IMG/VR virus record: IMGVR_UViG_3300022935_000005
Location: 1-64,000 of that record
Length of the DNA stretch: 64,000 nt
Direction: 5' to 3' (one strand)
Part shown: piece after piece, positions 4,949 through 52,551 of the stretch
How the letters are laid out: every line of letters starts with the position of its first letter
How positions within the stretch are numbered: the first letter of the stretch is position 1
Notes under the pieces: generated by a model
Seen by the model: the letters and a program-made list of their open reading frames with translations, nothing else
Database searches by the model: none
What the model was told of the DNA's origin: nothing
Translations under genes and position numbers: made by a program

Positions 4949-6034
4949 ATGGACATCAAGACCATCAAGACCATCGTTCCCAACCTTCCCGCCAACATTG
5001 CTGTTCTCATGCGAGGACCGACAGGTGTGGGTAAGTCTCACGTAGCCCGGGCTTTCGCTGATGAGCTCGGTCTGCCCTTCATCGATGTCCGTGGTTCCAC
5101 CATGGATGAGGCGAAGGTCGGTGGTCTGCCGGATATGCGGGCTGTCGATGAGAAGAAGGTTGCCACCTTCGTGGTCCCTAGCTGGTTCAAGACCGCTTGT
5201 GACCGCCCCTGTGTCATCATGCTGGACGAGCTTAACCGCTCCATGCCGACCGTGATGCAGGCCTTCTTCCAGATTGTCCTGGACCGTGAGCTCGGTAACG
5301 ATGAGGACGGTGTCCCCTACCGACTCCACCCGGAAACCCGGGTCATCGCGGCCATCAACGCCGGTAACGAGTACGACGTCAACGAGATGGACCCCGCTCT
5401 GCTCCGCCGCTTCTGGGTCTGCGATGTTGAGCCCACAGTGGCTGACTGGACCGATTGGGCTGCCGGTGCTGGTGTGGACAAGGTCATGGTCGAGTTCATC
5501 AAGCAGGAGCCTGCGCACTGGCGTGTTGACCCGGCCTCGGTTGAGCCCGGTACGGTTGTCCCGACTCCGGCCAGCTGGCACCGTCTCAGCGACTCGCTGG
5601 TTCACATGGGTCTGGCACCGGAGAAGCTGGCTGGTAACGATGTTCCGGCTCACTTCTACCCCGTCCTGACTGGGTTCGTCGGAGTTGAGGCAGCTATTGC
5701 CTTCCGCGACTTCGTCAAGAACTACGAGCTCCAGATCACCGCTGAAGACATCCTCGAGGGTAAGATCAAGGCTGCAGACATCAAGGATGCTCCTGCTAGC
5801 CAGCTCGCCTCGGTGGTTGAGAAGATCACGGCTCACGCCGCGGACAACAACTGGAAGCCGGCTCAGGTGAAGCGGATTGCCAAGTTCGCGGAAGAGGTTG
5901 GTGGTGAGTTCCTCATCCAGGTCTTCACCGGAGTTCAGAAGGCAGGGAACATGAAGAACCTGCTGCCCCTGAACCAGGCCATCGGCATGAAGGTGGTCGA
6001 GCTGGTTAACGCCGCTCGCGCTACTCAGAAGTAA
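4949..6034 (+). CDS. MoxR-like AAA+ ATPase (AAA_5 type)
   Basis: Walker A GPTGVGKS, Walker B IMLDELNR, sensor AAIN, MDPALLRRF. Confidence 0.9.
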   Translation: MDIKTIKTIVPNLPANIAVLMRGPTGVGKSHVARAFADELGLPFIDVRGSTMDEAKVGGLPDMRAVDEKKVATFVVPSWFKTACDRPCVIMLDELNRSMPTVMQAFFQIVLDRELGNDEDGVPYRLHPETRVIAAINAGNEYDVNEMDPALLRRFWVCDVEPTVADWTDWAAGAGVDKVMVEFIKQEPAHWRVDPASVEPGTVVPTPASWHRLSDSLVHMGLAPEKLAGNDVPAHFYPVLTGFVGVEAAIAFRDFVKNYELQITAEDILEGKIKAADIKDAPASQLASVVEKITAHAADNNWKPAQVKRIAKFAEEVGGEFLIQVFTGVQKAGNMKNLLPLNQAIGMKVVELVNAARATQK

Positions 6035-6051
6035 ACGGGAGTTTGCTCCCT

Positions 6052-6094
6052 AAGGGGGACCGGGGTTTTTGGGTTAACTCGGTCCCCCTTCTTT
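6052..6094 (+). terminator. Rho-independent terminator
   Basis: AAGGGGGACCGGG/CTCGGTCCCCCTT stem followed by CTTT. Confidence 0.75.
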
Positions 6095-6124
6095 ATACAA
6101 TCCTCTATAGACAGGAGGTAACCC

Positions 6125-6331
6125 GTGGCCGAAAAGAAAGTAACTCTTAACGAGATGATCGCTCAGATTCGAGAGTGGCATACTGAAGCTCTTAACATGC
6201 GTAACGATGGATGGACACAGCAGGCTTTTAAGGATCGACTAGAGTTCCTACATGCCCGTATGACAGCTGTGGTAGAGTCAATCAACCCTCCTCAGACGGC
6301 GCCGACAGAGAATAATAACGACAAAGAGTAG
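6125..6331 (+). CDS. Hypothetical protein
   Basis: AGGAGG SD, GTG start. Confidence 0.75.
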   Translation: MAEKKVTLNEMIAQIREWHTEALNMRNDGWTQQAFKDRLEFLHARMTAVVESINPPQTAPTENNNDKE

Positions 6332-6336
6332 ACATT

Positions 6337-6401
6337 CGTGCAATAGTGCTTTAACCTGTGGTATTATATAAATGATGGTGGGGAAGGAATAGAGCTTCTC
6401 C
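6337..6401 (+). promoter_or_regulatory. Early promoter plus 5' hairpin
   Basis: CGTGCAAT 6337, TGTGGTATTAT (TATTAT 6362), GGGGAAG/CTTCTCC stem 6380-6401. Confidence 0.85.
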
Positions 6402-6420
6402 CAAAACTACAGGAGTCCAC

Positions 6421-7821
6421 ATGGCAGACAAGACGACCGCAACAGACGCTCCCTTTGAGCACGCCTCTGAAGAGGTAGCCAAGGCATTTGACCTTCAGCC
6501 TCACCTCGTTGGTATGATGCTGGAGGAGCCGTTCTACACTAAGGTCCTTCGAATCCTGACCAAGACCCGGACTCGGAAGATCCCGACCGCCGGAGTTATT
6601 GCGAAGGACGGGGACCTGCAGATGTACTGGAACGACCGGTTCATGGCGGCTCTGCCCGGTAAGCAGATTCGGGGAGTCCTCAAGCATGAGATGCTCCACC
6701 TCATCCTCGAACACACCACCACTCGTAAGTACGAGCCTCACAAGGTTTGGAACTACGCCACTGACTTGGCGATCAACAGCCACCTCATGGACGAGCTTCC
6801 TGAGTTTGGTCTCTTCCCGGGTAAGGCGTTTAAGCCGCTGACTGAGGAACAACAGGAGCGAATGGGTGAGGCAGCTGTCAAGCAGTACGAGGCAGTGTCC
6901 AAGAAGATTGAAAGCTTCCCAGCTGGGCAGGCTGCTGAGTGGTACTTCGCGCGGCTCATGGAAGATGATGAAGTCAAGGAAGCCATTGAGAACCCGAAGC
7001 AGAACGGTAAGAGTCTGGCTGATGCTCTCCGCGATGGTGATGTGACCATCAACGAGAACGGTCAGATTTGTGATGCTGACGGTAACCCTCTCCCCACTGT
7101 CCCTGGTACGCTGGATGACCATGACGGCTGGGGCGAAATGAGCGATGAAGACCGTGAGTACATCAAGGCCAAGGTCAAGCAGGCTGCTGGTGACGCTGCC
7201 AAGGAGTGCGACCAGAAGGGTAGCTGGGGTTCGGTACCTGCAGAACTGCGGAAGCAGATCAAGGCAGCACTGGTCAACGAAGTTCCCTGGCAGAAGATCC
7301 TTGACCGCTTCTGTGGTTACAGCCGACGGGCCAACCGGACCACGAGCTACAGCCGCCTTCACAGCACCATGGGTCGTTTGGTTCCCGGTGCCAAGCGTGG
7401 GTACACGAGCTCGGTGGCAGCTTACATTGACCAGTCCGGCTCAGTCAGCGATCGTGAGCTGGCCCTCTGCTTCGGCGAGCTGGCTAACCTGGCCAAGAAC
7501 ACTGAGTTCACCTGCTACCACTTCGACACCGAGGTGGATGAGAAGAGCAAGACGGTATGGAAGCGTAAGGGTCACCCTGCCAACCGGACTCGCTGCGGTG
7601 GTACGGACTTCGCTGCTCCGACCGAGCACGCTGGAAAGCACAAGCGGGAGTTCGACGGGTACATCATCCTGACCGACGGCTACGCTCCTGACCCGGGTCC
7701 GAGCCGGTTGCCCCGAGCTTGGGTGGTTACCCCTGACGGAGCAGTTCAGGACTGGATGTTCAACTACAAGAAGGACGTCATCGTAAAGATGACTTGGCCA
7801 AAGAGTCTGCAGGAGGCGTAA
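6421..7821 (+). CDS. DUF2201-family protein: HExxH metallopeptidase-like domain plus vWA-like domain
   Basis: HEMLH, WNYATDLAIN, MIDAS DQSGS, GGTDF, ILTDG. Confidence 0.9.
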   Translation: MADKTTATDAPFEHASEEVAKAFDLQPHLVGMMLEEPFYTKVLRILTKTRTRKIPTAGVIAKDGDLQMYWNDRFMAALPGKQIRGVLKHEMLHLILEHTTTRKYEPHKVWNYATDLAINSHLMDELPEFGLFPGKAFKPLTEEQQERMGEAAVKQYEAVSKKIESFPAGQAAEWYFARLMEDDEVKEAIENPKQNGKSLADALRDGDVTINENGQICDADGNPLPTVPGTLDDHDGWGEMSDEDREYIKAKVKQAAGDAAKECDQKGSWGSVPAELRKQIKAALVNEVPWQKILDRFCGYSRRANRTTSYSRLHSTMGRLVPGAKRGYTSSVAAYIDQSGSVSDRELALCFGELANLAKNTEFTCYHFDTEVDEKSKTVWKRKGHPANRTRCGGTDFAAPTEHAGKHKREFDGYIILTDGYAPDPGPSRLPRAWVVTPDGAVQDWMFNYKKDVIVKMTWPKSLQEA

Positions 7822-8796: not shown

Positions 8797-9036
8797 ATGA
8801 ACAATCTCCACATCATTGCCAACTATCTATTCGATAACCCAGGAGCGCGGTACACGGATGTCACAAAGCACTTGTGCCAGGAGCGCGGAAAGGTATGGAG
8901 CAAAGGGCACTATACTCGGTACTTCACCAACCCGATCTACAGCTCAGGTCGCCGGTACGCTCACCACCTCTGGTGCAAGACCCCATGCGGTGGATGGATG
9001 TTGACATTGGAAGGATATGGATATGTCCGCAAGTAA
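8797..9036 (+). CDS. Hypothetical protein (possible winged helix)
   Basis: MNNLHIIANYLFDNPGARYTDV; ORF-track extension to 8545 spans the repeat DNA and is probably spurious. Confidence 0.7.
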   Translation: MNNLHIIANYLFDNPGARYTDVTKHLCQERGKVWSKGHYTRYFTNPIYSSGRRYAHHLWCKTPCGGWMLTLEGYGYVRK

Positions 9037-9298
9037 GCTCATAGAGGTCGGAGATCTGGTCCGGTGGGGCTGGCCCCGCTTCCACAGCGATTCTCGCGTG
9101 GGAATCGTGACGCGAGTAGATATCAAACCTCGAGGCGCCGGATTCAGAGTGCCCAACCCGCGAGTCCGCTATGTTGTGCAGTGGTTCTACCCAGATGGAC
9201 AACCCAGCATCACTCAAGAGCACGTCTTCAACAATGAGATAACACGAGTCACAGAGGATCGAAATCCATGGCAAGACAAAACAGAGACTTCAAAGTAG
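9017..9298 (+). CDS. Small SH3/KOW-like protein
   Basis: IEVGDLVRW...GIVTRV...YVVQWF. Confidence 0.8.
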   Translation: MDMSASKLIEVGDLVRWGWPRFHSDSRVGIVTRVDIKPRGAGFRVPNPRVRYVVQWFYPDGQPSITQEHVFNNEITRVTEDRNPWQDKTETSK

Positions 9299-9534
9299 GA
9301 GACATTGTCCAGTGGGCTCCACCGATCGGCGGCGCCAACTCCGGTCACGTCTTTAGAGATGCAGTGGGTCTTATTGTAGGTGTCAAGTACCCAGACCCCG
9401 ACTCACAGCGTAACGAATGGGCAGACCCTCACATGTGGTACACAGTCCAGTGGTTCAGAGACGGCATTGCATCGGGTCGACCAGATCACATCGTTGAACA
9501 CCACATTCAGAGAGTTCGAGATGACGCACCATAG
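9268..9534 (+). CDS. Small SH3/KOW-like protein
   Basis: FKVGDIVQW...GLIVGV...YTVQWF. Confidence 0.8.
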   Translation: MARQNRDFKVGDIVQWAPPIGGANSGHVFRDAVGLIVGVKYPDPDSQRNEWADPHMWYTVQWFRDGIASGRPDHIVEHHIQRVRDDAP

Positions 9535-9817
9535 CAAGCTCAGCATCGGCGCGGGAGACACAGTGGTCCGGGTTCATGAGCAGGAAGACACCGATCCCTA
9601 CCCAGGACTCGTTATCAGGCGGGTAGAACCTCGTGAACTCTTGAGTATGGTGTTTGGAGAGGGAGATGACTTCGAAATGGGGGAAGCTCTATGGATGCGA
9701 GATGCAGCATCTGGTCTAGAGGAGTATTCGGGTGAATGGGTCCGCTATGAAGTCCTTTGGCCGGATGGTCGGTTCTCGATCGAATCGATCGCCCAAATCA
9801 GGAAGGCATATTCGTGA
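9521..9817 (+). CDS. Small SH3/KOW-like protein
   Basis: IGAGDTVVRV...GLVIRR...YEVLWPDG. Confidence 0.75.
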   Translation: MTHHSKLSIGAGDTVVRVHEQEDTDPYPGLVIRRVEPRELLSMVFGEGDDFEMGEALWMRDAASGLEEYSGEWVRYEVLWPDGRFSIESIAQIRKAYS

Positions 9818-10017
9818 TCGGTGTGGGAGACATTGTCTGCGTTGACGGAGATCTACTGGGTACAGCAATGGGACTCGGTCTTGTTACCCGGGTTTGTGAG
9901 TCTCGCTTTTCTAATTCATGTACTCGGTTTGTAGACGTCCTCTGGGCCTCGGGTGATATGTTCAAGGATGTTGATATGAACGTGCTGTTGCTTGTGCATT
10001 CTGCCGGCAGCCCGTGA
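9814..10017 (+). CDS. Small SH3/KOW-like protein
   Basis: GTGA overlap; IGVGDIVCV...GLVTRV...VDVLWASG. Confidence 0.75.
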   Translation: MIGVGDIVCVDGDLLGTAMGLGLVTRVCESRFSNSCTRFVDVLWASGDMFKDVDMNVLLLVHSAGSP

Positions 10018-10039
10018 CCTGCTAGTATACTTAAATGTT

Positions 10040-10276
10040 ATGGACACCGACTCACGCTATTCTGATGTTATCATTGGCTCACTTGTTGACCATCCGGTCT
10101 ACGGCCCGGGGCTGATCACTGCTGTCACGACCGAACCCGCATTTGCGACGCGCCAAAGCACGCATCGTCCCGATTACATCATTGTCTGTAGCGTCCTATG
10201 GAACACGGGTGAGTTGCAAACTGGCTGGCCCGCCAACCGGCTCGTCGATTACCTTGTGTTAACGTCGATTATCTAG
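10040..10276 (+). CDS. Small SH3/Tudor-like protein
   Basis: IGSLVDHPVYGPGLITAV...SVLWNTG; TATACTTA 6 nt upstream of ATG. Confidence 0.75.
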   Translation: MDTDSRYSDVIIGSLVDHPVYGPGLITAVTTEPAFATRQSTHRPDYIIVCSVLWNTGELQTGWPANRLVDYLVLTSII

Positions 10277-10293
10277 AGCGTATACTTAACGAT

Positions 10294-10575
10294 ATGGCAA
10301 AGGAAACTGTATTCTCCCCGCGCGGTGCTCTGCACCGGAACCTTGTTGGGTGCATCATCGTTCATCCGCACTTGGGTCACGGGCTCGTCACGAGCACGGA
10401 TCGCTACTGGACTGAAGTCCGGCAACAGCGACGTCAAGTCTGGACTGTTCTCTGGTCTGAGACCGGTACCGCTGAAGATGTTGACGAACGCATCATGCAA
10501 CACTGCATGATCATTGACGACGGAGACGGCGCTAAAGAGTGGGGTTCATGGGCCGAGGTTGTAGGTCACAAGTGA
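10294..10575 (+). CDS. Small SH3/Tudor-like protein
   Basis: VGCIIVHPHLGHGLVTS...WTVLWSETG; TATACTTA 5 nt upstream of ATG. Confidence 0.75.
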   Translation: MAKETVFSPRGALHRNLVGCIIVHPHLGHGLVTSTDRYWTEVRQQRRQVWTVLWSETGTAEDVDERIMQHCMIIDDGDGAKEWGSWAEVVGHK

Positions 10576-10890: not shown

Positions 10891-11360
10891 AGGGTATCCT
10901 TTCACAACCGATCTACCTTTAAGTATGGTGACTGGATGTATTGTGATTTCTCTTGGAGTGCGATCCGAGCAAGAAGGCACGCCTTCGGCGCGAGGATGCA
11001 CCCATGAAACGCAAAAAGTGGGTGTGCCGAAAACGCGTCCCGCGTTATTCACTGTTTCCAAAAAAACGCGTGTGTCCGGCGCCGACGCGCCGATAAATGA
11101 GAAAACCCACTTCACTCTCCGGCGGTGCCATTGTATGAGGGTGGGAAAGGTAACAACGTGGGTTTGACTATTATAATAGAGCTGTAATCGTTGAGGAGGA
11201 GGCGGATGGGTCGTGTTGGAGCGAATCAAGAAGATCAACAAGACGTTCGCTGTAATATCTATAATAGTTGCTGTCTGGTTGCACATGTACGTAAAATCAA
11301 TCAAGCAACAGAGCGATGATGCTGTATATTTAGAAAAACAACCAGGATGGAGAAATCAAA

Positions 11361-11726
11361 ATGTCCAACAAAATCAATGCAACCCAGTTGAGAAATCTGA
11401 TCATGGAAGTGCTAAATGAAGAAGCACACGAAGAAGGCGAGCACAATGAGCTAGACGAGATGGACGCTGCCATGCCCATGCCAAAGGGCGATGCTGAGCG
11501 ACTACCTGTCGGCACTCGTGTTACGCACCCTGAATGGGGCGCCGGTGAAGTCGTCGGTCATGGAGACCATGAGTTCGATCACCTTGTTCGATGGGACAAG
11601 CTTCCTAACCGCGATCGTCTTGCTCACAGATTCCAGCTTATTCCTGAGAGCGTTGGTAATGATGATTTGAATGAGTCAGCTGACCTTGCACGTTGGCGTA
11701 AGCTAGCAGGCATTCTAGTAGATTGA
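11361..11726 (+). CDS. Leader-motif protein with Tudor-like domain
   Basis: KINATQLRNLIMEVLNE; LPVGTRVTHPEWGAGEVVG; C-terminal LARWRKLAGI. Confidence 0.85.
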   Translation: MSNKINATQLRNLIMEVLNEEAHEEGEHNELDEMDAAMPMPKGDAERLPVGTRVTHPEWGAGEVVGHGDHEFDHLVRWDKLPNRDRLAHRFQLIPESVGNDDLNESADLARWRKLAGILVD

Positions 11727-11977
11727 TGGTCTCGTCTTTCTATTGCGTCTGGTACAAAGATGCCAGTGTCAATAAGGAGACGTGCGTCGGAGCATGCTCT
11801 ACTTGGGATGAGGCAAGAAGTCTCGCTGGGCGCCTCTACACGGTAAAGAAAAAGATAGACGATTCAGAAAATCTCTCTACTGGTATTTTTCTCTTCTCTC
11901 CCGGCGAACTTTATACAGCGCGATCTCCCAAAAGGTGGCAGATAATGCCGCTGCTGACCAGCAATACACAGCCTTAG
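11726..11977 (+). CDS. Hypothetical protein
   Basis: TGATG coupling to upstream gene. Confidence 0.65.
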   Translation: MVSSFYCVWYKDASVNKETCVGACSTWDEARSLAGRLYTVKKKIDDSENLSTGIFLFSPGELYTARSPKRWQIMPLLTSNTQP

Positions 11978-12019
11978 ATTATATTTACTATTAGTATCTA
12001 CGCACGGGAGATTTTTTAT

Positions 12020-12973
12020 ATGCGCAACTCAAGAGACAAGATTCGAAAGATCATTGCTGAACAGCTCGAGATTGAGCTTGAAAAGCTTGAAGACTTAGAG
12101 GCTACGGAAGATGCCTGGGCCGGCGGAGAAAACCTCGTCCACGACCTCGACCATTCTAAGATCACTGGTGGTGAATCGAACGTTGCGAGTCCAGAGACTC
12201 TAGAGATTATTGTCGCAGAGGTCCGGCGGCGTATCCAAGAGATGCAGGCTCATTCAAGGCCTGGAGATCTAAAACAGCCCCGGCCAGAAGAGACTGAATT
12301 TCCTGTTGTGGTTGGTTACTCCATCAACGGTCAACCCCAGTCAGAGATCGCATATGACGACGAAGAGTTAACTCAAATTTTAGATTACCTCGCGCCGTTA
12401 AGTCCTGGCGCAAAGCAGATCCCCTACAGTATAGATTCACTCAGCGATGTAGAAGCAGCTGACGTTCCTGTTGGTTCTAGAATTGAGCGCTATTCAGAGG
12501 CAAAGGATCAGAACAAGGACGGCAAGAACGATTTCGAAGATGTCAAGATTGCCAGAATGCGTGCTTCTGGTATGTCCGACGCCGAGATCAAGAAGAAACA
12601 TCCAGAGCTCTTTGAGGAAAGTGTTGTGCACAAACAACTTAGAAAGATCATCAGGGAAGCTATCATGGCAGAAAGTGGTATAGACGCAAATAAGCGAGCC
12701 GTTGAATTGTTAAATAGAGACTATGACGTTATTTCTGATGACACTAGCTACCCTTATGGTCGCTACCGCGGGGATGTTAGGCAGAAGACTGTATACGCCA
12801 GAAAAGACGGGCAGCCTGTTCCAGAAGCAGATATTAATCTTCTTAAAACCCGGGATGCTAAGGTTCGGGAAGCAGGTGGCTCAATGGCAGCTCTATCTGG
12901 AGTCTACACATCGAAAGTCTCCAGTGATGGACTCCAGATTATTGTAGATTATTATAGACACACGGCGGGGTAA
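12020..12973 (+). CDS. Modular leader-motif protein (putative internal head protein)
   Basis: DKIRKIIAEQ at N-terminus, internal KQLRKIIREA, DQNKDGKND Ca-binding-like loop. Confidence 0.85.
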   Translation: MRNSRDKIRKIIAEQLEIELEKLEDLEATEDAWAGGENLVHDLDHSKITGGESNVASPETLEIIVAEVRRRIQEMQAHSRPGDLKQPRPEETEFPVVVGYSINGQPQSEIAYDDEELTQILDYLAPLSPGAKQIPYSIDSLSDVEAADVPVGSRIERYSEAKDQNKDGKNDFEDVKIARMRASGMSDAEIKKKHPELFEESVVHKQLRKIIREAIMAESGIDANKRAVELLNRDYDVISDDTSYPYGRYRGDVRQKTVYARKDGQPVPEADINLLKTRDAKVREAGGSMAALSGVYTSKVSSDGLQIIVDYYRHTAG

Positions 12974-12975
12974 TC

Positions 12976-13395
12976 ATGAAGATCACAAGAACACAGATTA
13001 GAAATATTCTACAAGAAGCAATGGGTCAAGATGGAGTGTTTCCTGATCTAAGCCACCCTCTGATTGCTCCCTATGCTGACAAAATGCAGGGTCCTATTAA
13101 GGGCCGAGAAGGTAAGTGGTTCGTAGAATACCAGAGCTACAAGTACAATGCTGGTGGTCAAAGCGATCAAGGTATTACTGTATACCTCCTCCCTGATGGT
13201 AAATACACTGCTCGAGTTGGGGGTAACTTTAACAATACGATCTCTGGTCGTATAGGGAAGGATTTTGACGATCCAGAAAGTGCTATCGAAGCTGCCCTTA
13301 ACTCAGGCCCTTCAGCTACCGGCCCAACAGCCGCAGAGCTTCTCAAGAAGGTCGGCGAAAAAGTCTCCACTCGCGGATACATAGGACAGGATTAA
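12976..13395 (+). CDS. Leader-motif protein
   Basis: MKITRTQIRNILQEA. Confidence 0.85.
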   Translation: MKITRTQIRNILQEAMGQDGVFPDLSHPLIAPYADKMQGPIKGREGKWFVEYQSYKYNAGGQSDQGITVYLLPDGKYTARVGGNFNNTISGRIGKDFDDPESAIEAALNSGPSATGPTAAELLKKVGEKVSTRGYIGQD

Positions 13396-13398
13396 ATC

Positions 13399-13668
13399 AT
13401 GAAAATCACCAAGAGACAACTTAGAAGAATCATCAAAGAATCGTTCGACGAATTTGGTATGAGTGAGTACGGTCTTTACAACGATGCTGGATCGTCAGTA
13501 GAAGCAGAGTTTGACGCATTGCTTGACGAAGTTGCCTTGTTTATGAGTGATGCAAGAAAAAGGCTAAATGCCCTAATGGAGAAACACTCGGACGTCGGGG
13601 CTTCTGATAGTGAAGCGGTCGATTTGATAAGCGCAGCTTTTGAAGACGCAAAGTCTGGCATGCGATAG
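13399..13668 (+). CDS. Leader-motif protein, acidic
   Basis: MKITKRQLRRIIKES. Confidence 0.85.
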   Translation: MKITKRQLRRIIKESFDEFGMSEYGLYNDAGSSVEAEFDALLDEVALFMSDARKRLNALMEKHSDVGASDSEAVDLISAAFEDAKSGMR

Positions 13669-13677
13669 GGAGAAATC

Positions 13678-13980
13678 ATGAAGATCACAAAACAACAACT
13701 TAGAAGAATTATCTCAGAGCAGCTTACACTAGATGATCTTGTGGTTGGACCTGAACAGCCTCGACAACTCGGTTACGGTGAAGGTGAGGGTCGCATGTCA
13801 AAATCTCAACTTGACAAGATCGCTCGTTATTCTCAATCACTGCATGATAAACTGCTTGACGATGATGATCTACCAGAATGGGTACAATCAAAGATCGCTG
13901 TCGCTGCAGATAACATCGGTAAAGTATACCACTATCTTGATTACAAAATTAGACGTATGGAACAAGGAGATGAATCATGA
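13678..13980 (+). CDS. Leader-motif protein with helical domain
   Basis: MKITKQQLRRIISEQ; LPEWVQSKIAVA. Confidence 0.85.
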   Translation: MKITKQQLRRIISEQLTLDDLVVGPEQPRQLGYGEGEGRMSKSQLDKIARYSQSLHDKLLDDDDLPEWVQSKIAVAADNIGKVYHYLDYKIRRMEQGDES

Positions 13981-14522
13981 GACTGAAAGAATGCTGCGGT
14001 TCGTGTGGCGCTGAACTAGACAATGTTGAAGTTGATGCTCACGTAGAGCTTGATGATCTTATGATGCCGGCACCATCCGAAGTACTTGGTGCGTATGTTG
14101 GGTTCCTTAGAGCTTACCATCTTTGGATGCACGGCGCGCACAATGTAGTTAGTGGTCCGTCCTTTGCTGGTGACCATGTAGAGCTTTATGGTAAGATCTA
14201 TGAAGAGGTACAAGGCTCCGTCGACGGAGTGGTAGAGAAGGGTCTCGGAGTACTTCAGGATGAGTCTATTGCTTGCCCTATGAAGATTATGGGAGACGCT
14301 ATGCTTATTCTTGGTGAGTGGGAATCTCCTGTAGGTCTACCAGCTGAGAGGCTTGCTGCTCTCGCTCTTGAATATACTAAGGCTTTAGTCCAGATAACTG
14401 AAGGAACCGCACAAGTTCTAGAAGATATGGGAGTACTTAGCTATGGTATGGACAATATGCTCGGAGGACTGGCTGATACTCACGAGAACTATGTCTATCT
14501 TCTTCAGCAGCGTAATGGGTGA
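13977..14522 (+). CDS. Dps/ferritin-like protein
   Basis: HGAHNVVSGPSFAGDHVELYGKIYEE resembles the Dps HWNVxGxxF.xLH signature; four-helix pattern. Confidence 0.75.
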   Translation: MRLKECCGSCGAELDNVEVDAHVELDDLMMPAPSEVLGAYVGFLRAYHLWMHGAHNVVSGPSFAGDHVELYGKIYEEVQGSVDGVVEKGLGVLQDESIACPMKIMGDAMLILGEWESPVGLPAERLAALALEYTKALVQITEGTAQVLEDMGVLSYGMDNMLGGLADTHENYVYLLQQRNG

Positions 14523-14573
14523 ACAATATCTTACTACTCGTTAGAATTATATCTAAATGAGGAGTGAGTTGAT

Positions 14574-14837
14574 ATGAGAGACATCGCGAGCATTTTGGGA
14601 GCAAAGGAGGTTACCTTGACCCCATTTGAGGAAGCAGATTATAATCTTCTCATGTTCGCCGAGCATGCTGTTTTTCATTCGCAGCTTCGTAGATTGCTTG
14701 ATAGAATCAAGGTTGTTGATACTCAACTAGAGCACTCTAAAGAAAGCGACCCTCGACTTATTGCAGAAAAAGAGTTACTAAACATGACTCTGATCACGTT
14801 TTTAGATTCATATGATGTGTTTGTATATGAGGCCTGA
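14574..14837 (+). CDS. Hypothetical protein
   Basis: GAGGAG SD; TGAACA-N16-TAGAAT upstream (14520-14547). Confidence 0.75.
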   Translation: MRDIASILGAKEVTLTPFEEADYNLLMFAEHAVFHSQLRRLLDRIKVVDTQLEHSKESDPRLIAEKELLNMTLITFLDSYDVFVYEA

Positions 14838-15115
14838 TGACACATATACCTGATACCCACTATGATAGTGTTGTTGTTACCGTGAAGGGATGGGATGGCT
14901 CAAGAATTATTGGGGCATTTGCTAATTTAGACTGCGCAAAAACTGCTATTAAGAGTTATTACGAGAACACATGTGATACAGGAAGCTTTAAGGAAGAAGT
15001 AATTATTGACTTTCTTAAGCTGAACAAGGTAAGTAAGGTAATGACCGTACAGTTTGCGCGGGATAGTGATCTTCCTTATGAAGACTTGACTCTTCGCTAC
15101 CATGATTATGTTTAA
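14837..15115 (+). CDS. Hypothetical protein
   Basis: TGATG coupling. Confidence 0.7.
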   Translation: MTHIPDTHYDSVVVTVKGWDGSRIIGAFANLDCAKTAIKSYYENTCDTGSFKEEVIIDFLKLNKVSKVMTVQFARDSDLPYEDLTLRYHDYV

Positions 15116-15136
15116 AGTAGCGTAATAATTAAAGTC

Positions 15137-15427
15137 ATGGCCAAAGTAAATGAAAATGGGATAGGAAGCAACTATAAGACTCTTGACCCAAACCCTATAA
15201 CTCACTTTAACGATCCAAGAATCAGTGTTGAGATTTATCCCGGGGCTTGGGGAGATGTGCACGCAAACGTTTCGTGTAAAGAGTTGAGTTATGACTCAGG
15301 CCTTAAGACATTTAAGACCGACCAAGAGGCAAGAACGTTTGCTCTAAACCTACACGATCAGCTTGTTACCAAACTTGATTCGTTAATAGAAAACGTTATG
15401 TTAAGAATCATCAGGGAGATGAGCTAA
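15137..15427 (+). CDS. Hypothetical protein with C-terminal LRIIRE motif
   Basis: ORF; ends LIENVMLRIIREMS. Confidence 0.7.
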   Translation: MAKVNENGIGSNYKTLDPNPITHFNDPRISVEIYPGAWGDVHANVSCKELSYDSGLKTFKTDQEARTFALNLHDQLVTKLDSLIENVMLRIIREMS

Positions 15428-16195
15428 TAGAAATTCTCTTATTGATCTAGTCTTTGGTCCAATAGCGTATTCATCAAACCTAACAGCTGCCGCTGACACA
15501 ATGGAGACAACTTCATTTTTGTGGTTCATTATCGGAGAACCACTTGAGCCACCTACCGCCGGCACTGTGAATAGACTTATCATCGATATATCACCGATAT
15601 AGTAACCATCGAAAACAGGAACTGCTAACGGAGAAGATAGCCCAGCTGGGTTGGCCATGTTGTATACTTTGGAATGGAGCATCATGTCCTTTTGTGCTAT
15701 CTCTAAACCGGGTCCTAAGTCCTTGTTCGCTTTGAGGAGACATATGTCATTGTTTGTATCGATCGCAACAATCTCTCCTCGTCCTTCTCTGCCAAATCCT
15801 GTAGTCAAGCTTATCCTGTAAGCCACCCTGAGATTTGACGCTAATGGCCCGGGTACCATTGGCATCTTTGGAGGCATGCATATATGACCTGCTGTAACGA
15901 TATATTCATCTTTACTTGAGGTCTCTAAAATAAACCCTGAACCCATGCTGGTTTGACTTCCCAAGATTCCTTCTACACACCCTTCGCTTTTATCATTTTC
16001 GCATGAGATTGAAAAAACAAACTCTTGTGTTGTCATGACAAATGACTCTATGGGGAAGTATGAGTTCTCTTTTTTGATTACAGTATTGTCTGTTGTTCTT
16101 ATAATTTTATTCGGAACTTTAATGTTGAGACAACCAGACAGCAGAAAGAATAAAGCCGTAATCGAGAGTAGCAGCTGAATGATTAACTTTCTCAT
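15401..16195 (-). CDS. Trypsin-like serine protease, probable lipoprotein
   Basis: Lipobox LLSGC; TAGHIC, NDICLL, GGSSGSP catalytic triad motifs. Confidence 0.88.
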   Translation of the reverse strand: MRKLIIQLLLSITALFFLLSGCLNIKVPNKIIRTTDNTVIKKENSYFPIESFVMTTQEFVFSISCENDKSEGCVEGILGSQTSMGSGFILETSSKDEYIVTAGHICMPPKMPMVPGPLASNLRVAYRISLTTGFGREGRGEIVAIDTNNDICLLKANKDLGPGLEIAQKDMMLHSKVYNMANPAGLSSPLAVPVFDGYYIGDISMISLFTVPAVGGSSGSPIMNHKNEVVSIVSAAAVRFDEYAIGPKTRSIREFLLAHLPDDS

Positions 16196-19996: not shown

Positions 19997-21166
19997 ATGT
20001 CGATATTCAAGAAGCATAAAACTATCGCAGACCGATCAGCTAGCGACAGAGCACGTCATAGAAAAAAGATCGAAAAAGCGATAAAAGACGGCATTCACAA
20101 TATCGTAGCAGAAGAATCTATCATCGGAGAAAGTGGAAAAAAGAAGTTTAAGATTCCAGTTAGGGGAATCAAAGAACATCGCTTTGTCTATGGAGACAAC
20201 GGATCCAGAAGAGCTGGTTCTGGTGAAGGCAACGATATTAGTCGCGGTCAAACAATCGGAAAAAAGAAGAAGCAAAAAGGTCAAGGAAACCCTGATAAAC
20301 CTGGTAACGAAAAAGGCGAAGAGTTCTACGAAGTAGAGTTAACTCTTGATCAAGTCGCAGAATATCTCTTTAAAGACTTAAAGCTTCCAAACTTTGAAGA
20401 CAAGAAGAATGCTCAAGTAATAACCAAGAAAATCAGAAGGAAAGGTTACAGGACAAAAGGCATCAGACCAAGACTAGATAAAAAGAAGTCTGCAATTCAA
20501 CGTATTAAGAGAATGAAGAAAGATGAGTTCGCGGGCAAAAGAGACTCCGACTCTGATGAGAACTTTAGTTTCTTGGAAAAGGATTTACGTTACAAGCACT
20601 TTAAAGTTACCGAAAAGCGTACTTCGAATGCTGCTATCTTCTTTTTGATGGATATATCTGGGTCTATGACTACTGAAAAGAAGTTCCTGTCGAGAAGCTT
20701 TTTCTTCCTACTTTATCATTTCATCCGTTCAAGATACGACACCGTTGAAATAAATTTTGTCGCATATGAATCTCAAGCTTATGAAGTGGATGAAAAAAGC
20801 TTCTTTGAACGTGGCTCATCTGGAGGTACGATCACATCAACTGGTGTCAAGATGGTGAACGAGATCATTGACTCCCGATACCATCCATCATCATGGAATA
20901 TATATACTTTTCACGCGTCTGACGGCGATAACTGGCCAAGTGATAATGAGGCTTTGCTAAGCCAAATTGATGAGATGATCCCGAAGGTTCAATTCTATGG
21001 CTATTGTGAAATTGAGCCAAGCGCAGACAGGATACAGTTTTTAAGAGATAAAAGCTTAGGAGTACTCTTTGAAGGTTTAGTGTATGACAAGTTTAAGTCT
21101 TCCTCTATTACTTGTAAGGAAGATATATGGGAGGCATTCAATAGTTTCTTTGGGGGTGAGTTGTGA
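19997..21166 (+). CDS. yeaH: YeaH/YhbH (DUF444) vWA-like protein
   Basis: DRARH, DLRY, LMDISGSM, SGGT, YHPSSWNIYTFHASDGDNW. Confidence 0.92.
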   Translation: MSIFKKHKTIADRSASDRARHRKKIEKAIKDGIHNIVAEESIIGESGKKKFKIPVRGIKEHRFVYGDNGSRRAGSGEGNDISRGQTIGKKKKQKGQGNPDKPGNEKGEEFYEVELTLDQVAEYLFKDLKLPNFEDKKNAQVITKKIRRKGYRTKGIRPRLDKKKSAIQRIKRMKKDEFAGKRDSDSDENFSFLEKDLRYKHFKVTEKRTSNAAIFFLMDISGSMTTEKKFLSRSFFFLLYHFIRSRYDTVEINFVAYESQAYEVDEKSFFERGSSGGTITSTGVKMVNEIIDSRYHPSSWNIYTFHASDGDNWPSDNEALLSQIDEMIPKVQFYGYCEIEPSADRIQFLRDKSLGVLFEGLVYDKFKSSSITCKEDIWEAFNSFFGGEL

Positions 21167-22467
21167 ACTTCTTTGATGAACTAGCAGAGTGGGATGAAAA
21201 GCTTTGTAAGATGGCAAAAGAGCACGGACTAGATTGGTTTCCGCTTGCTTACGAGACTTGTGATTACTACGAAATGATTGGAGCTATGGCTTATCACGGC
21301 ATGCCGTCGCATTACAGTCACTGGAGCTTCGGTAAGTCTTTTGAAAGAAACCATACGATGTATGGAATGGGAATGCAGGGGTTACCTTATGAGATGATCA
21401 TCAATAGTAATCCATCGCTAGCTTATCTCATGGAAGAAAATCCGATGTACCTACAGGTTCTAATCATGGCTCACTGTATTGGACACTCCGACTTCTTTAA
21501 GAATAACATTACCTTTAAGCATACACACCCAGAAAACATTATATTAAGGATGAGAAATGCTAAGAGGTTTATCGATAAACTGATCGAAGATCCAAGCATA
21601 GGGATCGATGCAGTAGAAGATATTCTAGATTCAGCGCACGCTTTATCAATGAATGTTCCTCACAGGTATGTACCGTATGTTTCACAGAAGGACCAAAAGC
21701 GACAGTTAGTCAGTGACATCAAGGGTGGTTTATACGATAACTCTTTCCATGTTCCTGATCCGGAAAAAGTTCCAGTCTCTAATGAAATAAATATTCTAGC
21801 ATTCTTGGCAGACCAAAGCCCGATCTTGGAAGAGTGGCAAAGAGACCTACTGTTGATTGTAGAAGAAGAAGCTCACTACTTCATGCCACAGATAAGAACT
21901 AAGATTATGAACGAAGGATGGGCGAGTTATTGGCACTATCGTCTTATGCATGAGCTCGAGCTTCCTTCGTCGATGCATATACCTTTTCTTAAAACTCACA
22001 ATGAGGTTGTAAGACCTCATCCAGCATCCATTAACCCATATCATCTAGGGTTTCATTTATTTAGAAAGATAGAAGAAAGACATGGGTTAGAGGAATGCTT
22101 TATTGCCAGAGAATCTTTAAATGATGAAAGCTTCATAAGGCAGTATTTAACACAAGAAGACTGCGAAGAGTTAGAGCTGTTTAGCTTTTCGCTAAAAAAA
22201 GATGAATACGTTGTTGACGATGTCTCTGATGATGAGGGGTGGAAAAATATCAAGGAAGACCTAATCAAACAGGTCGGAGGTAATAGTATACCAATAATAG
22301 AGATTGACAATGTGGACGAATCTAATGTGCTTTGCTTAATTCATGAACATGATGGAAGGGACCTAGAGCTAGACTACGCAGATGCAGTTGTGCACCATAT
22401 TAGCAAGCTATGGGGCGATGTAGTAAAGCTTGATACCATCATTGAAGACGAACCTTTTGAGATCTAA
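21163..22467 (+). CDS. spoVR: SpoVR/YcgB family protein
   Basis: GMPSHYSHWSFGK, YEMIINSNP, GHSDFFKNN, TKIMNEGWASYWH, NPYHLG. Confidence 0.95.
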   Translation: MNFFDELAEWDEKLCKMAKEHGLDWFPLAYETCDYYEMIGAMAYHGMPSHYSHWSFGKSFERNHTMYGMGMQGLPYEMIINSNPSLAYLMEENPMYLQVLIMAHCIGHSDFFKNNITFKHTHPENIILRMRNAKRFIDKLIEDPSIGIDAVEDILDSAHALSMNVPHRYVPYVSQKDQKRQLVSDIKGGLYDNSFHVPDPEKVPVSNEINILAFLADQSPILEEWQRDLLLIVEEEAHYFMPQIRTKIMNEGWASYWHYRLMHELELPSSMHIPFLKTHNEVVRPHPASINPYHLGFHLFRKIEERHGLEECFIARESLNDESFIRQYLTQEDCEELELFSFSLKKDEYVVDDVSDDEGWKNIKEDLIKQVGGNSIPIIEIDNVDESNVLCLIHEHDGRDLELDYADAVVHHISKLWGDVVKLDTIIEDEPFEI

Positions 22468-22479
22468 CCCGGGGAAAAC

Positions 22480-24408
22480 ATGTCTGATAAAAACTTTCTA
22501 GAAATCATTAAGAGCCAAAGAGAAGAGAAGAAGCGCGAGAAGTTCGCCGGTACTTTTCTTGAATATCTTTCTTTAGTAGAGGAAGATCCAAGTATTACTG
22601 ACCACGCGCATAAGCGTCTGTATGACGCTGTAGTTTCTCACGGGACAGGGGTGATGGAAGACTCTGATCCTCGAAAGCACAAATTGTTTGATGGTGATAA
22701 CGTAAAAACCTACGAATACTTTCAATCAGAATTTTTTGGAATGGAATCAGTTATCGCGAAGCTTATGAGGTTTATGCGCTCTGCTGCTCTTAAGGGTGAA
22801 GAAAGTCGACAAGTTCTATTGTTGATGGGTCCTGTAGGAGCTGGTAAGTCTGCGCTAACAGAGCACATTAAGAAGTCTTTGGATGGGCAACCATACTATC
22901 ACCTTGTAGGAGACCCTCAGCGAGGAGAGCCACTTCAGTTGTTACCTCGTTCCCTAAGAGACCGATTTAATGAAATGCTGGGTGTCAGTATCGAGGGTGA
23001 CCTTTCCCCAGTCGCTAGACATCTACTATTTGAAGAATACGATGGTCAATACGAAAAGTTTAAAGTAAAAGAAACTACATTCTCCCAACGGGCTCGTCGA
23101 GGTGTTGCATCTGTTCCGCCAATGGACGCAAACTCACAAGATGTATCAGTGTTGATCGGTTCAGAAGATATTTCGAAACTTGATAGGTATTCAGAAGACG
23201 ACCCACGAGCGTTATCTCTAAATGGCGCCTTCAACGTAGGTAATAGAGGTATTGTTGAGCTTGTGGAGGTCTTTAAGAATGAAATTGAGTTTCTCCACAC
23301 AATCATTACAGCGACCCAGGAGAAGAGAGTTCCTGCCCCTGGAAAGCACGACATGATTTACTTCGATGGAGTCATTCTCGCGCATTGTAATGAAGCTGAA
23401 TGGAATCGATTCCAGAGCGAGCACACTAACGAGGCTATCTTAGACCGTATTGTTAAGATTGATGTGCCATACGTTTTGGAGCTAGAGCAAGAAATTAAGA
23501 TTTATGAAAAGATTCTTTCTCGCTCTAACTTTAAAGCCCACATTGCTCCTCATACGATTAGAATTGCTTCGATGTTTTCCGTGCTTAGCCGGCTTAAGGA
23601 AAGTCAAAAGTGCGATCTTCTTACGAAGCTTAAGCTTTACAACGGCGAAGAAGTTGTTGAAAAGGGTAGAGTTAAGAAGATCGATATTAAAGACCTTCGT
23701 GATGAAGCACCGAATGAGGGTATGAATGGTATTTCTACAAGATTTATTATGAAAGCCGTCGATAATGCATTGAGCGATTCTGATAAAGACTTCATCACTC
23801 CAATCTCAATATTAGATTCTCTCGTCAAGCAGGTCAAGGATCAGATTATAGATAGAGAGTTCCAGAGTCGTTGTCTTGAGTTGATAAGGAACGTAGTAAG
23901 AGGTGAATACCTCAAGATGCTTGAAAAAGAAATTGCTAAGGCGTTCATCACAGCATATGAGCCGCAAGCGCAGTCTATCTTTGAAAACTATATGGATCAT
24001 GCAGAGGCTTACACAACGAAGAGCAGGCTTAAGGATCGTATCACAAAAGAAGAGATGCAGCCTGATGAGAACTTTATGAGGTCTATTGAGTCAACAATCG
24101 GAGTCAGTGGTTCGGGTAAGGATGGCTTTAGAGCTGACGTGACTGCTTACATGTTCTCTAAGATGAGAAGAGGGGAGAAGGTAGACTATACTTCCTATGA
24201 GCCTCTTAAGGAAGCTATCGAGACCTATCTAATCACGTCAGTAAAAGACTTGGCCAGGATTGTTACTAAGTCTAGAGCAAGAGATGAAGAACAGCAACAG
24301 AAATATTCAGAGATGGTTCAGACGCTAATTGATGAATATGGATACACTGCTGACTCTGCAGAAGAAGTTCTAACTTACGCCAGTAATAATCTCTGGAGAG
24401 ACAGTTAA
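22480..24408 (+). CDS. prkA: PrkA/YeaG AAA+ serine protein kinase family
   Basis: LLLMGPVGAGKS, GNRGIVELVEVFK, LAHCNEAEW, NEAILDR, EGMNGISTRF. Confidence 0.95.
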   Translation: MSDKNFLEIIKSQREEKKREKFAGTFLEYLSLVEEDPSITDHAHKRLYDAVVSHGTGVMEDSDPRKHKLFDGDNVKTYEYFQSEFFGMESVIAKLMRFMRSAALKGEESRQVLLLMGPVGAGKSALTEHIKKSLDGQPYYHLVGDPQRGEPLQLLPRSLRDRFNEMLGVSIEGDLSPVARHLLFEEYDGQYEKFKVKETTFSQRARRGVASVPPMDANSQDVSVLIGSEDISKLDRYSEDDPRALSLNGAFNVGNRGIVELVEVFKNEIEFLHTIITATQEKRVPAPGKHDMIYFDGVILAHCNEAEWNRFQSEHTNEAILDRIVKIDVPYVLELEQEIKIYEKILSRSNFKAHIAPHTIRIASMFSVLSRLKESQKCDLLTKLKLYNGEEVVEKGRVKKIDIKDLRDEAPNEGMNGISTRFIMKAVDNALSDSDKDFITPISILDSLVKQVKDQIIDREFQSRCLELIRNVVRGEYLKMLEKEIAKAFITAYEPQAQSIFENYMDHAEAYTTKSRLKDRITKEEMQPDENFMRSIESTIGVSGSGKDGFRADVTAYMFSKMRRGEKVDYTSYEPLKEAIETYLITSVKDLARIVTKSRARDEEQQQKYSEMVQTLIDEYGYTADSAEEVLTYASNNLWRDS

Positions 24409-28160: not shown

Positions 28161-29480
28161 TTGAGTAACGTCAGAAAAAGGTTCGTATTAGATACTAGCG
28201 TTCTGTTATATGACAAAACAGCAATACATTCTTTTCCCGGAAATGATGTCATCTTGCCGCTCCAAGTGATGGATGAGATTGATAAATTCAAGGAAAAGCC
28301 GGGAGTTATTGGAGAGTCAGCCAGATACGTTAACAGGTTTCTAGATGAAATGCGAGATTTTGGTAGACTAGATGTGGGAGTAGAAGTTCCAGAAGAATTC
28401 GCGGTCTCGCAAACTGTTATGATTAAGATTGAGGATAGAGTTGATTCTCTACCTAACGGATTAAAGGCCGACCGCCCCGACAACAAGATACTAGCAACTT
28501 GTCTCAACGAGGCTCAGAATGACGATCAGAGGCCCCTTGTCGTAATTACCAAAGACATTAACCTCCGAGTTAAGTGCGATGCACTGGGGATAGCTTCAGA
28601 GGACTACTATAAGGACCATATCGAGCAGGACAGCGCTGCCTTTACGGGGAGGAGAGAAATAGAGGTTACCAAGTCACAGCTTGACCTGTTTTTCCTTGAA
28701 GGAGAAGTAAAACTCACCGACCCGGCGCTCATCTTAATGCCTAATGAGTTTGTTGTGCTTAAGTCTGCTGAGAGTGGTGGATCTGGCTTAGGCATGTTTG
28801 ATGGAAACCAGATTGTTAAACTTAGACATGAGCCAGGAAAAGCAATGTCTGATTTTCAATCAAAAAATAAAGAGCAGAGATTTGCCGTAGAAGCATTGTT
28901 AGATAGTGACATAGAGCTGGTAACACTGACAGGCTTAGCTGGTTCAGGAAAGACTTACGTTGCGCTGATGGCTGGCCTTGACGGATTACAAGAGGGAAGG
29001 TACAACAGAATCGTAATCAGTAGGTCCATTCAACCTGTTGGTCGCGATTTAGGTTATTTACCCGGTGACGTCGACGAAAAAATGGCACCGTGGTTAGCTC
29101 CTATTATGGATAACTTTAGAACCATGATGGGTGATAAGGACTTTACGTATTTCAATATCATGATGGACAAGGGAGAGCTTGAAGTTGCTCCTCTATCATT
29201 TATTCGCGGTCGGACTTTCAATGATGCCTATGTAATAGTCGACGAGGCTCAAAACGCCACAATCCATGAGCTAAAGACTATCATCACCCGTGTTGGCAAG
29301 AATTCTAAAATCGTTCTTCTTGGAGATACAGATCAAATTGACACTCCGTACATCGACAGGCTAAGCAACGGATTGTCAATCGTTATCGATAAATTCAAGG
29401 ACAGAAAAGAACACGCGCATGTTCAGCTCGCCAAGGGACAGCGCTCCAATATAGCTTCAATTGCCTCAGAAATTCTTTAA
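28161..29480 (+). CDS. phoH: PIN-PhoH fusion (PhoH2/YlaK type)
   Basis: VLDTSVLL and DNKIL..ITKDINLRVK (PIN); GLAGSGKT, GYLPGD, RGRTF, DEAQN, GDTDQID. Confidence 0.93.
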   Translation: MSNVRKRFVLDTSVLLYDKTAIHSFPGNDVILPLQVMDEIDKFKEKPGVIGESARYVNRFLDEMRDFGRLDVGVEVPEEFAVSQTVMIKIEDRVDSLPNGLKADRPDNKILATCLNEAQNDDQRPLVVITKDINLRVKCDALGIASEDYYKDHIEQDSAAFTGRREIEVTKSQLDLFFLEGEVKLTDPALILMPNEFVVLKSAESGGSGLGMFDGNQIVKLRHEPGKAMSDFQSKNKEQRFAVEALLDSDIELVTLTGLAGSGKTYVALMAGLDGLQEGRYNRIVISRSIQPVGRDLGYLPGDVDEKMAPWLAPIMDNFRTMMGDKDFTYFNIMMDKGELEVAPLSFIRGRTFNDAYVIVDEAQNATIHELKTIITRVGKNSKIVLLGDTDQIDTPYIDRLSNGLSIVIDKFKDRKEHAHVQLAKGQRSNIASIASEIL

Positions 29481-40250: not shown

Positions 40251-40273
40251 AAAAAGAATAACGGAAGAAGAAT

Positions 40274-42159: not shown

Positions 42160-42160
42160 G

Positions 42161-42826: not shown

Positions 42827-42852
42827 AATGAGTCTAATGAAAGTGGTTTAAT

Positions 42853-43449: not shown

Positions 43450-43459
43450 AGGATACAAC

Positions 43460-44332: not shown

Positions 44333-44347
44333 ACAAAGGAAAATAGC

Positions 44348-52549: not shown

Positions 52550-52551
52550 GG

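Follow-up and report, generated by a model that had tools for sequence, protein, structure and literature searches.

Positions 1-64,000 of the IMG/VR record IMGVR_UViG_3300022935_000005 (280,913 bp), hereafter the window, come from an uncultured T4-like phage of ~281 kb and contain genes for myovirus baseplate and tail-fibre proteins. Five plus-strand open reading frames (ORFs, named here by their start positions) in the interval 11361-13980 open with variants of a single N-terminal leader, MKITKxQLRRIIKE (Table 1), which raises the question of what a short leader held in common by otherwise unrelated proteins is for. The answer that we favour, with moderate confidence and by analogy, is that it acts as a capsid-targeting leader, or prohead-core tag, functionally equivalent to the T4 internal proteins' capsid-targeting sequence.

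The five leaders lie where the original prediction had placed them, and the internal KQLRKIIREA that it had reported in ORF 12020 is a sixth copy (HKQLRKIIREA, residues 204-214, nt 12629-12661). The regular expression [QK][IL]Rx[IL][IL]xE has seven matches in the six frames of the window, whereas 200 block shuffles gave 0.07 on average and never more than 2. Of the seven, six fall at 11385-13696 on the plus strand, and the seventh, at 49328, is in a short inconsequential ORF. Every window copy was scored with a leader hidden Markov model (HMM) built from 294 sequences (Table 1). The N-terminus of ORF 12020 scores just 3.0 bits, weak by itself, and we take it to be a diverged true copy because the orthologue in the syntenic contig L003 begins MKITRQQLANIIKEE (L-numbers denote loci or contigs fetched for comparison). 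A further copy that had been suggested at the C-terminus of ORF 15137 (LRIIRE, within MLRIIREMS) is noise by the same model, a chance match at 0.7 bits and E 34. Beyond the leader the proteins are unrelated, as had been claimed: the six post-leader cargo parts are mutually dissimilar (pairwise BLASTP, all E > 0.4), and Pfam and PHROGs searches with ten genes of the region gave no family for the leader genes. Scanning the genome and its relatives with the leader HMM, as had been proposed, recovered at least 12 more leader genes of the same phage in a second array (L301), bringing its total to at least 17; in profile comparison the leader also matched the N-termini of two head-module families, F1 and F3, described below. 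The second array lies ~52 kb from the first, provided that the contig ends are joined.

The leader extends far beyond this phage. A degenerate DNA pattern for M-K-I-[ST]-x-x-Q-L-R-x-I-I-x-E, run on IMG/VR, matched at least 120 stretches where we estimate ~0.02 by chance, with up to 9 exact matches per locus and up to 16 leader genes per locus under a looser pattern. The consensus of 304 distinct N-termini is M-K-I-T-[KR]-x-Q-L-[RK]-x-I-I-[KR]-E-E, and 94% of them have Glu14, although the search expression did not demand it. In the fetched loci, 285 complete leader proteins (median length 109 amino acids, aa) fall into 212 cargo clusters, 172 of them singletons, and a profile search of 1.84 billion cluster representatives (50% identity) returned 11,251 proteins at E <= 0.001. 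Each of the best 150 matches of that search carries two to four leader copies, and in-frame fusions are common. Cargo domains are seldom recognised, the exceptions being YkuD, GNAT, an AAA_33 kinase, a cyclic phosphodiesterase domain, EF-hands and PG_binding. A protein Atlas search gave unnamed viral clusters only. Among 185,579 species genomes the leader occurs in only 12 stretches, all on contigs of metagenome-assembled genomes (MAGs) from unrelated phyla and none in an isolate genome; we take these as mis-binned phage DNA and find a cellular origin unsupported. A full-text literature search for the leader sequence found no publication, and one for capsid targeting in metagenomes found nothing relevant. 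Apparently undescribed, then, are the leader and how large a family it forms, its connection with F1 and F3, the fusions of several leaders, and the promoter-like motif treated below; the principle itself is known from T4.

A leader so constant in front of such variable cargo could in principle be conserved as nucleic acid, either as a translation-initiation enhancer or as the boundary of a recombination cassette for gene shuffling, with the peptide as a by-product. The A-rich codons after the ATG (AAA is the most frequent second codon), the tandem gene arrays and the frequent in-frame fusions would all suit such an origin. Codon usage nevertheless leads us to reject it as highly improbable: pairwise identity within the leader is 0.52 at codon position 3 and 0.77 at positions 1 and 2, six Leu, three Ile, four Thr and five Arg codons are in use, and, because synonymous codons vary this freely, selection acts at the protein level. 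Internal leader copies moreover stay in frame within fusion proteins, and F1 and F3 show the same peptide pattern with different codons.

As a peptide, the leader is modelled as a helix that stands apart from what follows it. In the AlphaFold model of ORF 13678 (33-sequence alignment, mean predicted local distance difference test score (pLDDT) 77), a helix at residues 5-15 is followed by a segment with pLDDT < 50 (17-34) and a hairpin with pLDDT > 90 (36-97); that of ORF 13399 (22 sequences, pLDDT 70) has a helix at 5-15, coil at 16-31 and helices at 32-62 and 71-85. I3-T4-x-x-Q7-L8 can be read as a hydrophobic staple and capping box, in agreement with the modelled helix start at residue 5. 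We read the leader as a portable, self-contained N-terminal amphipathic helix, structurally separate from its cargo, and this predicted helix-linker-cargo arrangement, together with the number of cargo clusters, indirectly supports the earlier idea of a portable helix on diverse proteins.

A walk onto a Joint Genome Institute (JGI) contig that matches the window sequence identically over a 14,314-nt overlap recovered the gene order Mre11-Rad50, TerL (PF03237), Portal_T4 (PF07230), a 280-aa protein and Peptidase_S77 (PF03420, 205 aa, L306:19140-19757), followed by F6, F1, F3, F4, F5, scaffold (505 aa), Gp23 (PF07068), gp13 and tail sheath. Judged by these matches, the phage encodes T4-type head machinery, namely TerL, a gp20 portal, a gp21-family S77 protease, a gp22-like scaffold and gp23. 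The protease blocks GECDHP and GISSRGVGS correspond to GELNHP and GVSSRGLGS of T4 gp21, which we take to hold the catalytic His and Ser, and its N-terminal KLLTEW parallels T4 QLLIETW. The scaffold start, MSTTLYKEAIAEAQ, parallels MLKEQLIAEAQ of T4 gp22, with LYKEAIAEAQ retaining the IAEA of EQLIAEAQ. In T4, gp21 cleaves after the Glu of L/I-x-E, and gp22 is cleaved between a Glu and an Ala (PMC9026906). We read that cut as falling at the IAE/A site, and by analogy the protease of the window phage would retain the T4 specificity. Relatives were sampled as 80 loci, an unbiased set with respect to the leader because they were picked by capsid protein alone; 33 of them show both the S77 protease and the capsid gene, and in these the block S77-(F6)-F1-F3-F4-F5-scaffold-major capsid protein is conserved. 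F1 is present in 33/33 modules (directly after the protease in the window phage, apart from F6) and starts MAK(L/M)(T/S)RxxLKx(L/I)VKECLxEIL, while F3 is present in 32/33 and starts M...KLTPxLL(R/K)(R/K)(I/L)VxEEKxK. Separately, the head module of some members includes a small basic protein (L224:7944-8171 and the F7 family; L218:8149-8376) of a type annotated as ribosomal protein S21 in Microcystis phage Mel-JY01, a phage on which a literature search found no paper. Among isolates, the nearest phages are those of the Mel-JY01 and Flavobacterium 'immuto' type.

Several observations tie the leader to this module. The leader profile aligns with F1 over 26 N-terminal columns (hhalign probability 95.2%, E 2.9e-8) and with F3 at P 1.2e-4, the common helix type being [KR]-x-[ST]-[KR]-x-x-L-[KR]-x-(hydrophobic)-(hydrophobic)-K-E. 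The apparent source of the tag is the N-terminal helix of these head-module proteins. I12-x-E14 has the form of a gp21-type cleavage motif, with its Glu at residue 14 in four window proteins, at 16 in ORF 11361 and at 213 in the internal copy of ORF 12020. Of the large genes that flank the leader in 129 loci, those for T4-type TerL (26), portal (16) and S77 protease (14) are the most frequent, and 11 loci have leader genes either in the portal-protease interval or immediately behind the protease. The helical-hairpin domain of ORF 13678 (Table 1), found in at least 523 viral stretches, occurs in other phages within a protein whose gene lies in the interval from T4-type portal to S77 protease, in 13/13 loci with both flanks visible; a Foldseek search of the ORF 13678 model against the PDB gave no match. 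Two further groups of proteins were seen around this interval. In an 'unk6' family (L097, L117, L136, L181, L187, L190, L197), whose genes stand after that of the 280-aa post-portal protein and before that of the S77 protease, the protein opens with a degenerate helix of leader-like type (e.g. MSLNRESLIRKLVRELIKQEL) and has the conserved end KNTHKA.GKISE.LVKLS.K.G. Loci L008-L080 (e.g. L039:4117-6909, L013:5458-6858) encode long mosaic proteins, often between portal and prohead protease, in which short conserved modules (the PEWVQSKI hairpin, DVYPSAYANGWAAKKYK and HPLEGHEYHKK) are joined by EEVEQIDE-like linkers; these may be multi-module head-internal proteins.

Leader genes also have an upstream element in common with structural genes. 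The original prediction had placed putative late promoters with the 8-mer TATATTTA before the cluster. The 8-mer itself is not enriched in the window (3 observed, 2.5 expected), and its copy at 11325 lies within coding sequence, but its 7-mer core, ATATTTA, is placed non-randomly: all four plus-strand copies in the window lie 24-39 nt 5' of an ORF start, in front of 11361, 12020, 29519 and the gp25-like baseplate gene 57333. Elsewhere in the same genome it stands 42 nt before the scaffold gene (L307:11459) and 27 nt before the leader gene L301:18301. Taken across the clade as ATATTTA/CTATTTA/TATATATA, the pattern precedes 14/29 scaffold genes (background 1.1%, p 2.5e-20) and 31/293 leader genes (background 1.4%, p 1.6e-17), in both sets mostly 24-37 nt before the ATG. 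ATATTTA is therefore, on its placement, probably a late-type promoter used by structural as well as leader genes, and the original promoter idea holds once the motif is shortened to this core. The late promoter of T4, TATAAATA, is unenriched in the window and absent from L307 (the head module) and L301, and a generic sigma-70 and terminator scan of 10.5-16.5 kb gave nothing above shuffles.

These links suggest the following route, whose steps from core docking through encapsidation and Glu14 cleavage to host delivery we infer. Tagged proteins would be made alongside the scaffold, probably from ATATTTA late-type promoters. The helix would dock on the scaffolding core, probably by mimicking the N-terminal helix of F1 and F3, and the cargo would be enclosed in the prohead. 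The gp21-family (S77) prohead protease would then probably cleave after Glu14 of the I-x-E motif and free the cargo inside the head, from which it may exit with the DNA at infection.

Two more window genes extend these links beyond the leader, and they also count towards a different view of the tagged proteins. ORF 11361 ends in ARWRKLAGILVD (nt 11688-11723), which equals the end of its own phage's scaffold, DRWARLAGIKSK (RWxKLAGI), and the same motif, [DN]RWxxLAG[IL], closes 33/33 scaffolds of the clade. Its 65-aa orthologue in L003 consists of leader, acidic linker and C-terminal motif without the insert, and the barrel-like segment therefore seems to have been inserted into a mini-scaffold frame. 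In ORF 12020, the N-half and its stand-alone orthologue (L003:2850, 169 aa, MKITRQQLANIIKEE...EDAWAGGDDLV, corresponding to the first ~200 residues) match F3 proteins by BLASTP (E 9e-8 and 6e-10); this half shares DAWAGG(D/E)NLV..ID with the central F3 motif (E/D)DA(D/W)xx(A/G)DxLxxxID, which the other window leader genes lack. The tagged proteins might accordingly be auxiliary scaffold or core parts, like T4 gp67 and gp68, that the helix incorporates in the prohead core and that are degraded and expelled at maturation or left as inert filling, cargo without any delivery or effector role. Leader homology to the F1 and F3 N-termini, the mini-scaffold look of ORF 11361, the F3 paralogy within ORF 12020, cargo that is acidic and of low complexity like T4 gp67, and the near absence of enzymatic domains all agree with this. 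We nonetheless think it unlikely: the cargo is extremely diverse and turns over fast (172 singletons in 212 clusters from 285 proteins), a structural role alone fits poorly with arrays of up to 16 leader genes per locus and at least 17 in the window phage, some cargo does carry YkuD, GNAT, AAA_33 kinase, cyclic phosphodiesterase or PG_binding domains, and folded cargo domains such as the PEWVQSKI hairpin are well conserved.

ORF 12020 had also been proposed to be a cleavable polyprotein. That it holds two leader modules in one frame stands; judged from its sequence, however, it is an in-frame fusion of two tagged genes. Its residues 202-317 are 55% identical to the stand-alone leader-bearing L089:11177 (115 aa), and the N-half has the orthologue described above. 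A GTG at 12626 is preceded by GAGGAA (12614-12619) at 6 nt spacing, and a separate internal start there is a possible alternative to a polyprotein. Each internal leader supplies an I-x-E site, which makes processing of multi-leader fusions by the prohead protease plausible, and ORF 12020 would be cut into two cargoes if cleavage at Glu occurs as proposed.

Against a capsid-targeting role stand several observations. Small accessory genes surround the window cluster, which is ~93 kb away from the head module, and a canonical leader gene is present in only 5/80 of the capsid-selected loci. The head role of F1 and F3 is deduced solely from their position, and PHROGs has no match for either family, nor for F4, F5, F6, the post-portal 280-aa protein or the scaffold. 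Nor did hhalign find significant similarity between F3 and T4 gp67 (E 0.32) or F1 and gp68 (E 0.65), and we reject homology for both pairs. By tblastn against 50,697 GenBank phage records, the leader does not significantly resemble the T4 capsid-targeting sequence (E ~8-10, as by chance) and the canonical leader protein has no homologue, so that the cultured phages among these records lack it; blastn and tblastn against the same records found no homologue of the region or of ORF 13678 either. Around the proposed cut, Glu14 is followed by another Glu in 65% of copies, where the T4 sites considered have Ala, and weak conservation runs past it, in an amphipathic pattern that fades out at about residue 23. 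The cargo is mostly acidic (median isoelectric point 4.9), while T4 IPII and IPIII are basic. Finally, the region of the second array contains near-consensus sigma-70 promoters (L301:13610-13690 and 15860-16057; TTGACT…TATAAT, extended -10), and this small-gene region may mix early and late transcription.

Some of these points would suit a helix that works in the cytoplasm, as a partner-binding or oligomerisation module that perhaps recruits its cargo to a phage or host hub (chaperone, RNA polymerase or ribosome), with the likeness to F1 and F3 reflecting descent only. The window and L301 clusters do lie in accessory regions, with small ORFs, DnaJ, FKBP and sigma-70-like promoters near, leader genes are scarce inside head modules, and amphipathic basic helices are a common type of interaction motif. 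Such a module would not account for leader genes standing non-randomly beside portal, S77 protease and TerL, for a promoter-like motif that they share with scaffold and baseplate genes, for a protease-type I-x-E at a fixed position, for the scaffold C-terminal motif on ORF 11361 or for the ORF 13678 domain in the portal-protease interval, and we consider it quite improbable.

A capsid-targeting leader remains our preferred reading of the window cluster. Its broadest form, in which MKITKxQLRRIIKEE is the universal capsid-loading and release tag of a large uncultured T4-like clade, with more than 11,000 protein families packed, freed by the protease (polyproteins included) and injected, is one we put forward only tentatively and think doubtful as a whole. 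Were it true, effectors and anti-defence proteins delivered by phages would form a vast repertoire, so far unexplored, that sequence alone would reveal. If the tag works, a 15-residue motif flags proteins by the thousand with which T4-like phages of the environment enter their hosts, a possibly rich source of counter-defence and host-takeover functions annotated in no current database; the cargo of T4 internal proteins includes an anti-restriction protein. It would also mean that the T4 capsid-targeting principle reaches beyond the T-even phages, suggest that the tag originated by copying the N-terminal helix of conserved head-core proteins, and provide a second, longer tag for packing foreign proteins into phage heads. 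The F1 to F6 families, the scaffold C-terminal motif and the ATATTTA element can serve as aids in annotating uncultured T4-like phages.

Table 1. Leader genes, gene halves and promoter-like motifs of the 11361-13980 cluster, with the leader HMM score of each copy.
Feature	Coordinates	Strand	Leader or opening	Leader HMM (bits)	Remarks
ATATTTA promoter-like motif	11326..11332	+			35 nt 5' of the 11361 start; within conserved small ORF 11213-11419
Leader gene 1 (11361), 121 aa	11361..11726	+	variant MSNKINATQLRNLIMEV	16.0	acidic linker, barrel-like insert PVGTRVTHPEWGAGEVVGHG, C-terminal scaffold-type motif
Conserved 84-aa ORF without leader	11723..11977	+			between two leader genes; orthologue L003:2605-2853 in the same position
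ATATTTA promoter-like motif	11981..11987	+			39 nt 5' of the 12020 start
N-half of fused 12020	12020..12625	+	diverged leader MRNSRDKIRKIIAEQ	3.0	motif EDAWAGGENLVHDLDH, EF-hand-like loop DQNKDGKNDFED; F3 paralogue
C-half of fused 12020	12626..12973	+	internal leader (V)HKQLRKIIREA	16.7	
Leader gene (12976), 139 aa	12976..13395	+	MKITRTQIRNILQEA	23.6	unrelated cargo; no Pfam or PHROG match
Leader gene (13399), 89 aa	13399..13668	+	MKITKRQLRRIIKES	39.5	helical cargo
Leader gene (13678), 100 aa	13678..13980	+	MKITKQQLRRIISEQ	33.1	disordered linker, helical-hairpin 'PEWVQSKI' domain

Two other cluster genes have homologues in metagenomic sequence: ORF 12976 has one (59%) in the L212 locus of a 305-kb MAG contig, and a homologue search with ORF 13399 returned 23 metagenomic orthologues, all unnamed, and nothing else. 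Next to the cluster, 13977-14522 (plus strand) encodes a 181-aa protein without leader that has a CxxC N-terminus, a Dps/ferritin-like signature (WMHGAHNVVSGPSFAGDHVELYG) and a weak PHROG match to 'DNA binding protein', and that is 70% conserved in L003. Upstream, at 9017-10575, several small paralogous ORFs follow one another, and their SH3/Tudor-like signature (GD.V.W…G.V…V.W) recurs in the insert of ORF 11361. The trypsin-like serine protease (PF13365) at 15401-16195 (minus strand; 58% in syntenic L003) begins with a lipoprotein-type signal (…FFLLSGC…) and is a secreted or envelope protease, separate from the prohead protease.

Further along the window, 19997-24408 (plus strand) is a complete operon of DUF444 (YeaH-like), SpoVR and PrkA, bacterial stress or starvation genes that are unusual as viral auxiliary genes and have homologues in the leader-bearing loci L083 and L165. 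A eukaryotic-type phosphomannomutase (PF03332; 16259-17047, plus strand) forms a large sugar-modification module together with the long glycosyltransferase block, aminotransferase and epimerase at 36771-53727 (plus strand). Other plus-strand genes encode a MoxR-type AAA ATPase with a VWA/metallopeptidase partner (DUF2201; 4949-7821) and a PIN-PhoH fusion protein (28161-29480). Past the baseplate genes, from 61243 onward and in L303:10001-23908, lie very large genes (1169, 2209 and 2417 aa) whose only family match is Laminin_G_3; their products are presumably fibre or baseplate-periphery proteins. The first ~11 kb of the window have 50-55% G+C, compared with ~40% for most of it.

Encapsulin cargo-loading peptides are, like the leader in its proposed role, short portable peptides that send diverse cargo into an HK97-fold shell; unlike it, they are usually C-terminal, bind the shell directly and are not removed, and their system has no scaffold, protease or DNA. 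In phage P22, coat binding by the scaffold resides at its end, and ORF 11361 likewise ends with the scaffold-end motif of its clade, a possible counterpart of the C-terminal coat-binding element of scaffolding proteins such as gp8; the C-terminus of T4 gp22 differs from that motif. The inner-body and ejection proteins of the giant phages phiKZ, 201phi2-1 and SPN3US invite comparison as numerous paralogous head-internal proteins of jumbo phages, and a diverged protease of gp21 type takes off their propeptides after Glu (PMC9026906, PMC7411985). Those propeptides differ from the leader, being long, with no shared short tag and with the cleavage motif S/A-x-E, and the window phage differs from the phiKZ group in its T4-like gp23 head module; no chimallivirus or phiKZ markers turned up in the ~150 kb examined (window and walked loci), although no dedicated search was made.

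The T4 prohead core proteins gp67, gp68 and gp22 are also small, acidic and helical, with genes next to those for portal, protease and scaffold, and F1 and F3 hold a comparable place, although F1 and F3 follow the protease and gp67 and gp68 precede it. N-terminal L/I-x-E motifs recur in the T4 core region (GLIE in gp67, LIPE in gp68, LLIE in gp21 and LIAE in gp22), and DLIKEEKIA of gp67 resembles the leader core.

The closest likeness is to the T4 internal proteins IPI, IPII and IPIII. In both cases a short N-terminal leader is common to unrelated small proteins and closes with (hydrophobic)-x-Glu, the gp21 motif; the phage encodes a gp20 portal, a protease of the gp21 family, a gp22-like scaffold and gp23; and, as at the polymorphic T-even internal-protein loci, the genes occupy variable regions apart from the head cluster. 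Among the diverse internal proteins of T-even phages, nothing but the capsid-targeting sequence is conserved (PMC3012670), and the first ten residues of IPIII, which are that sequence, suffice for packaging and are then removed by gp21 (PMC9026906). The likeness to the T4 sequence is one of pattern only, MK..Q.(hydrophobic)(hydrophobic)xE: against the 10 residues of T4, the leader of the window phage spans 15-23, with an apparent helix-capping signature (ITxxQL) and a basic face. Also unlike the T4 internal proteins, which number three per genome, the leader proteins, known here from sequence alone, are present in at least 17 copies in the window phage and in 11,251 clusters in the environment, are commonly joined in multi-leader fusions and carry mostly acidic cargo. 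In T4, as in this clade, the leader resembles the N-terminus of a head-core protein, with MKTYQEFIAE of IPIII set against MLKEQLIAE of the scaffold gp22.

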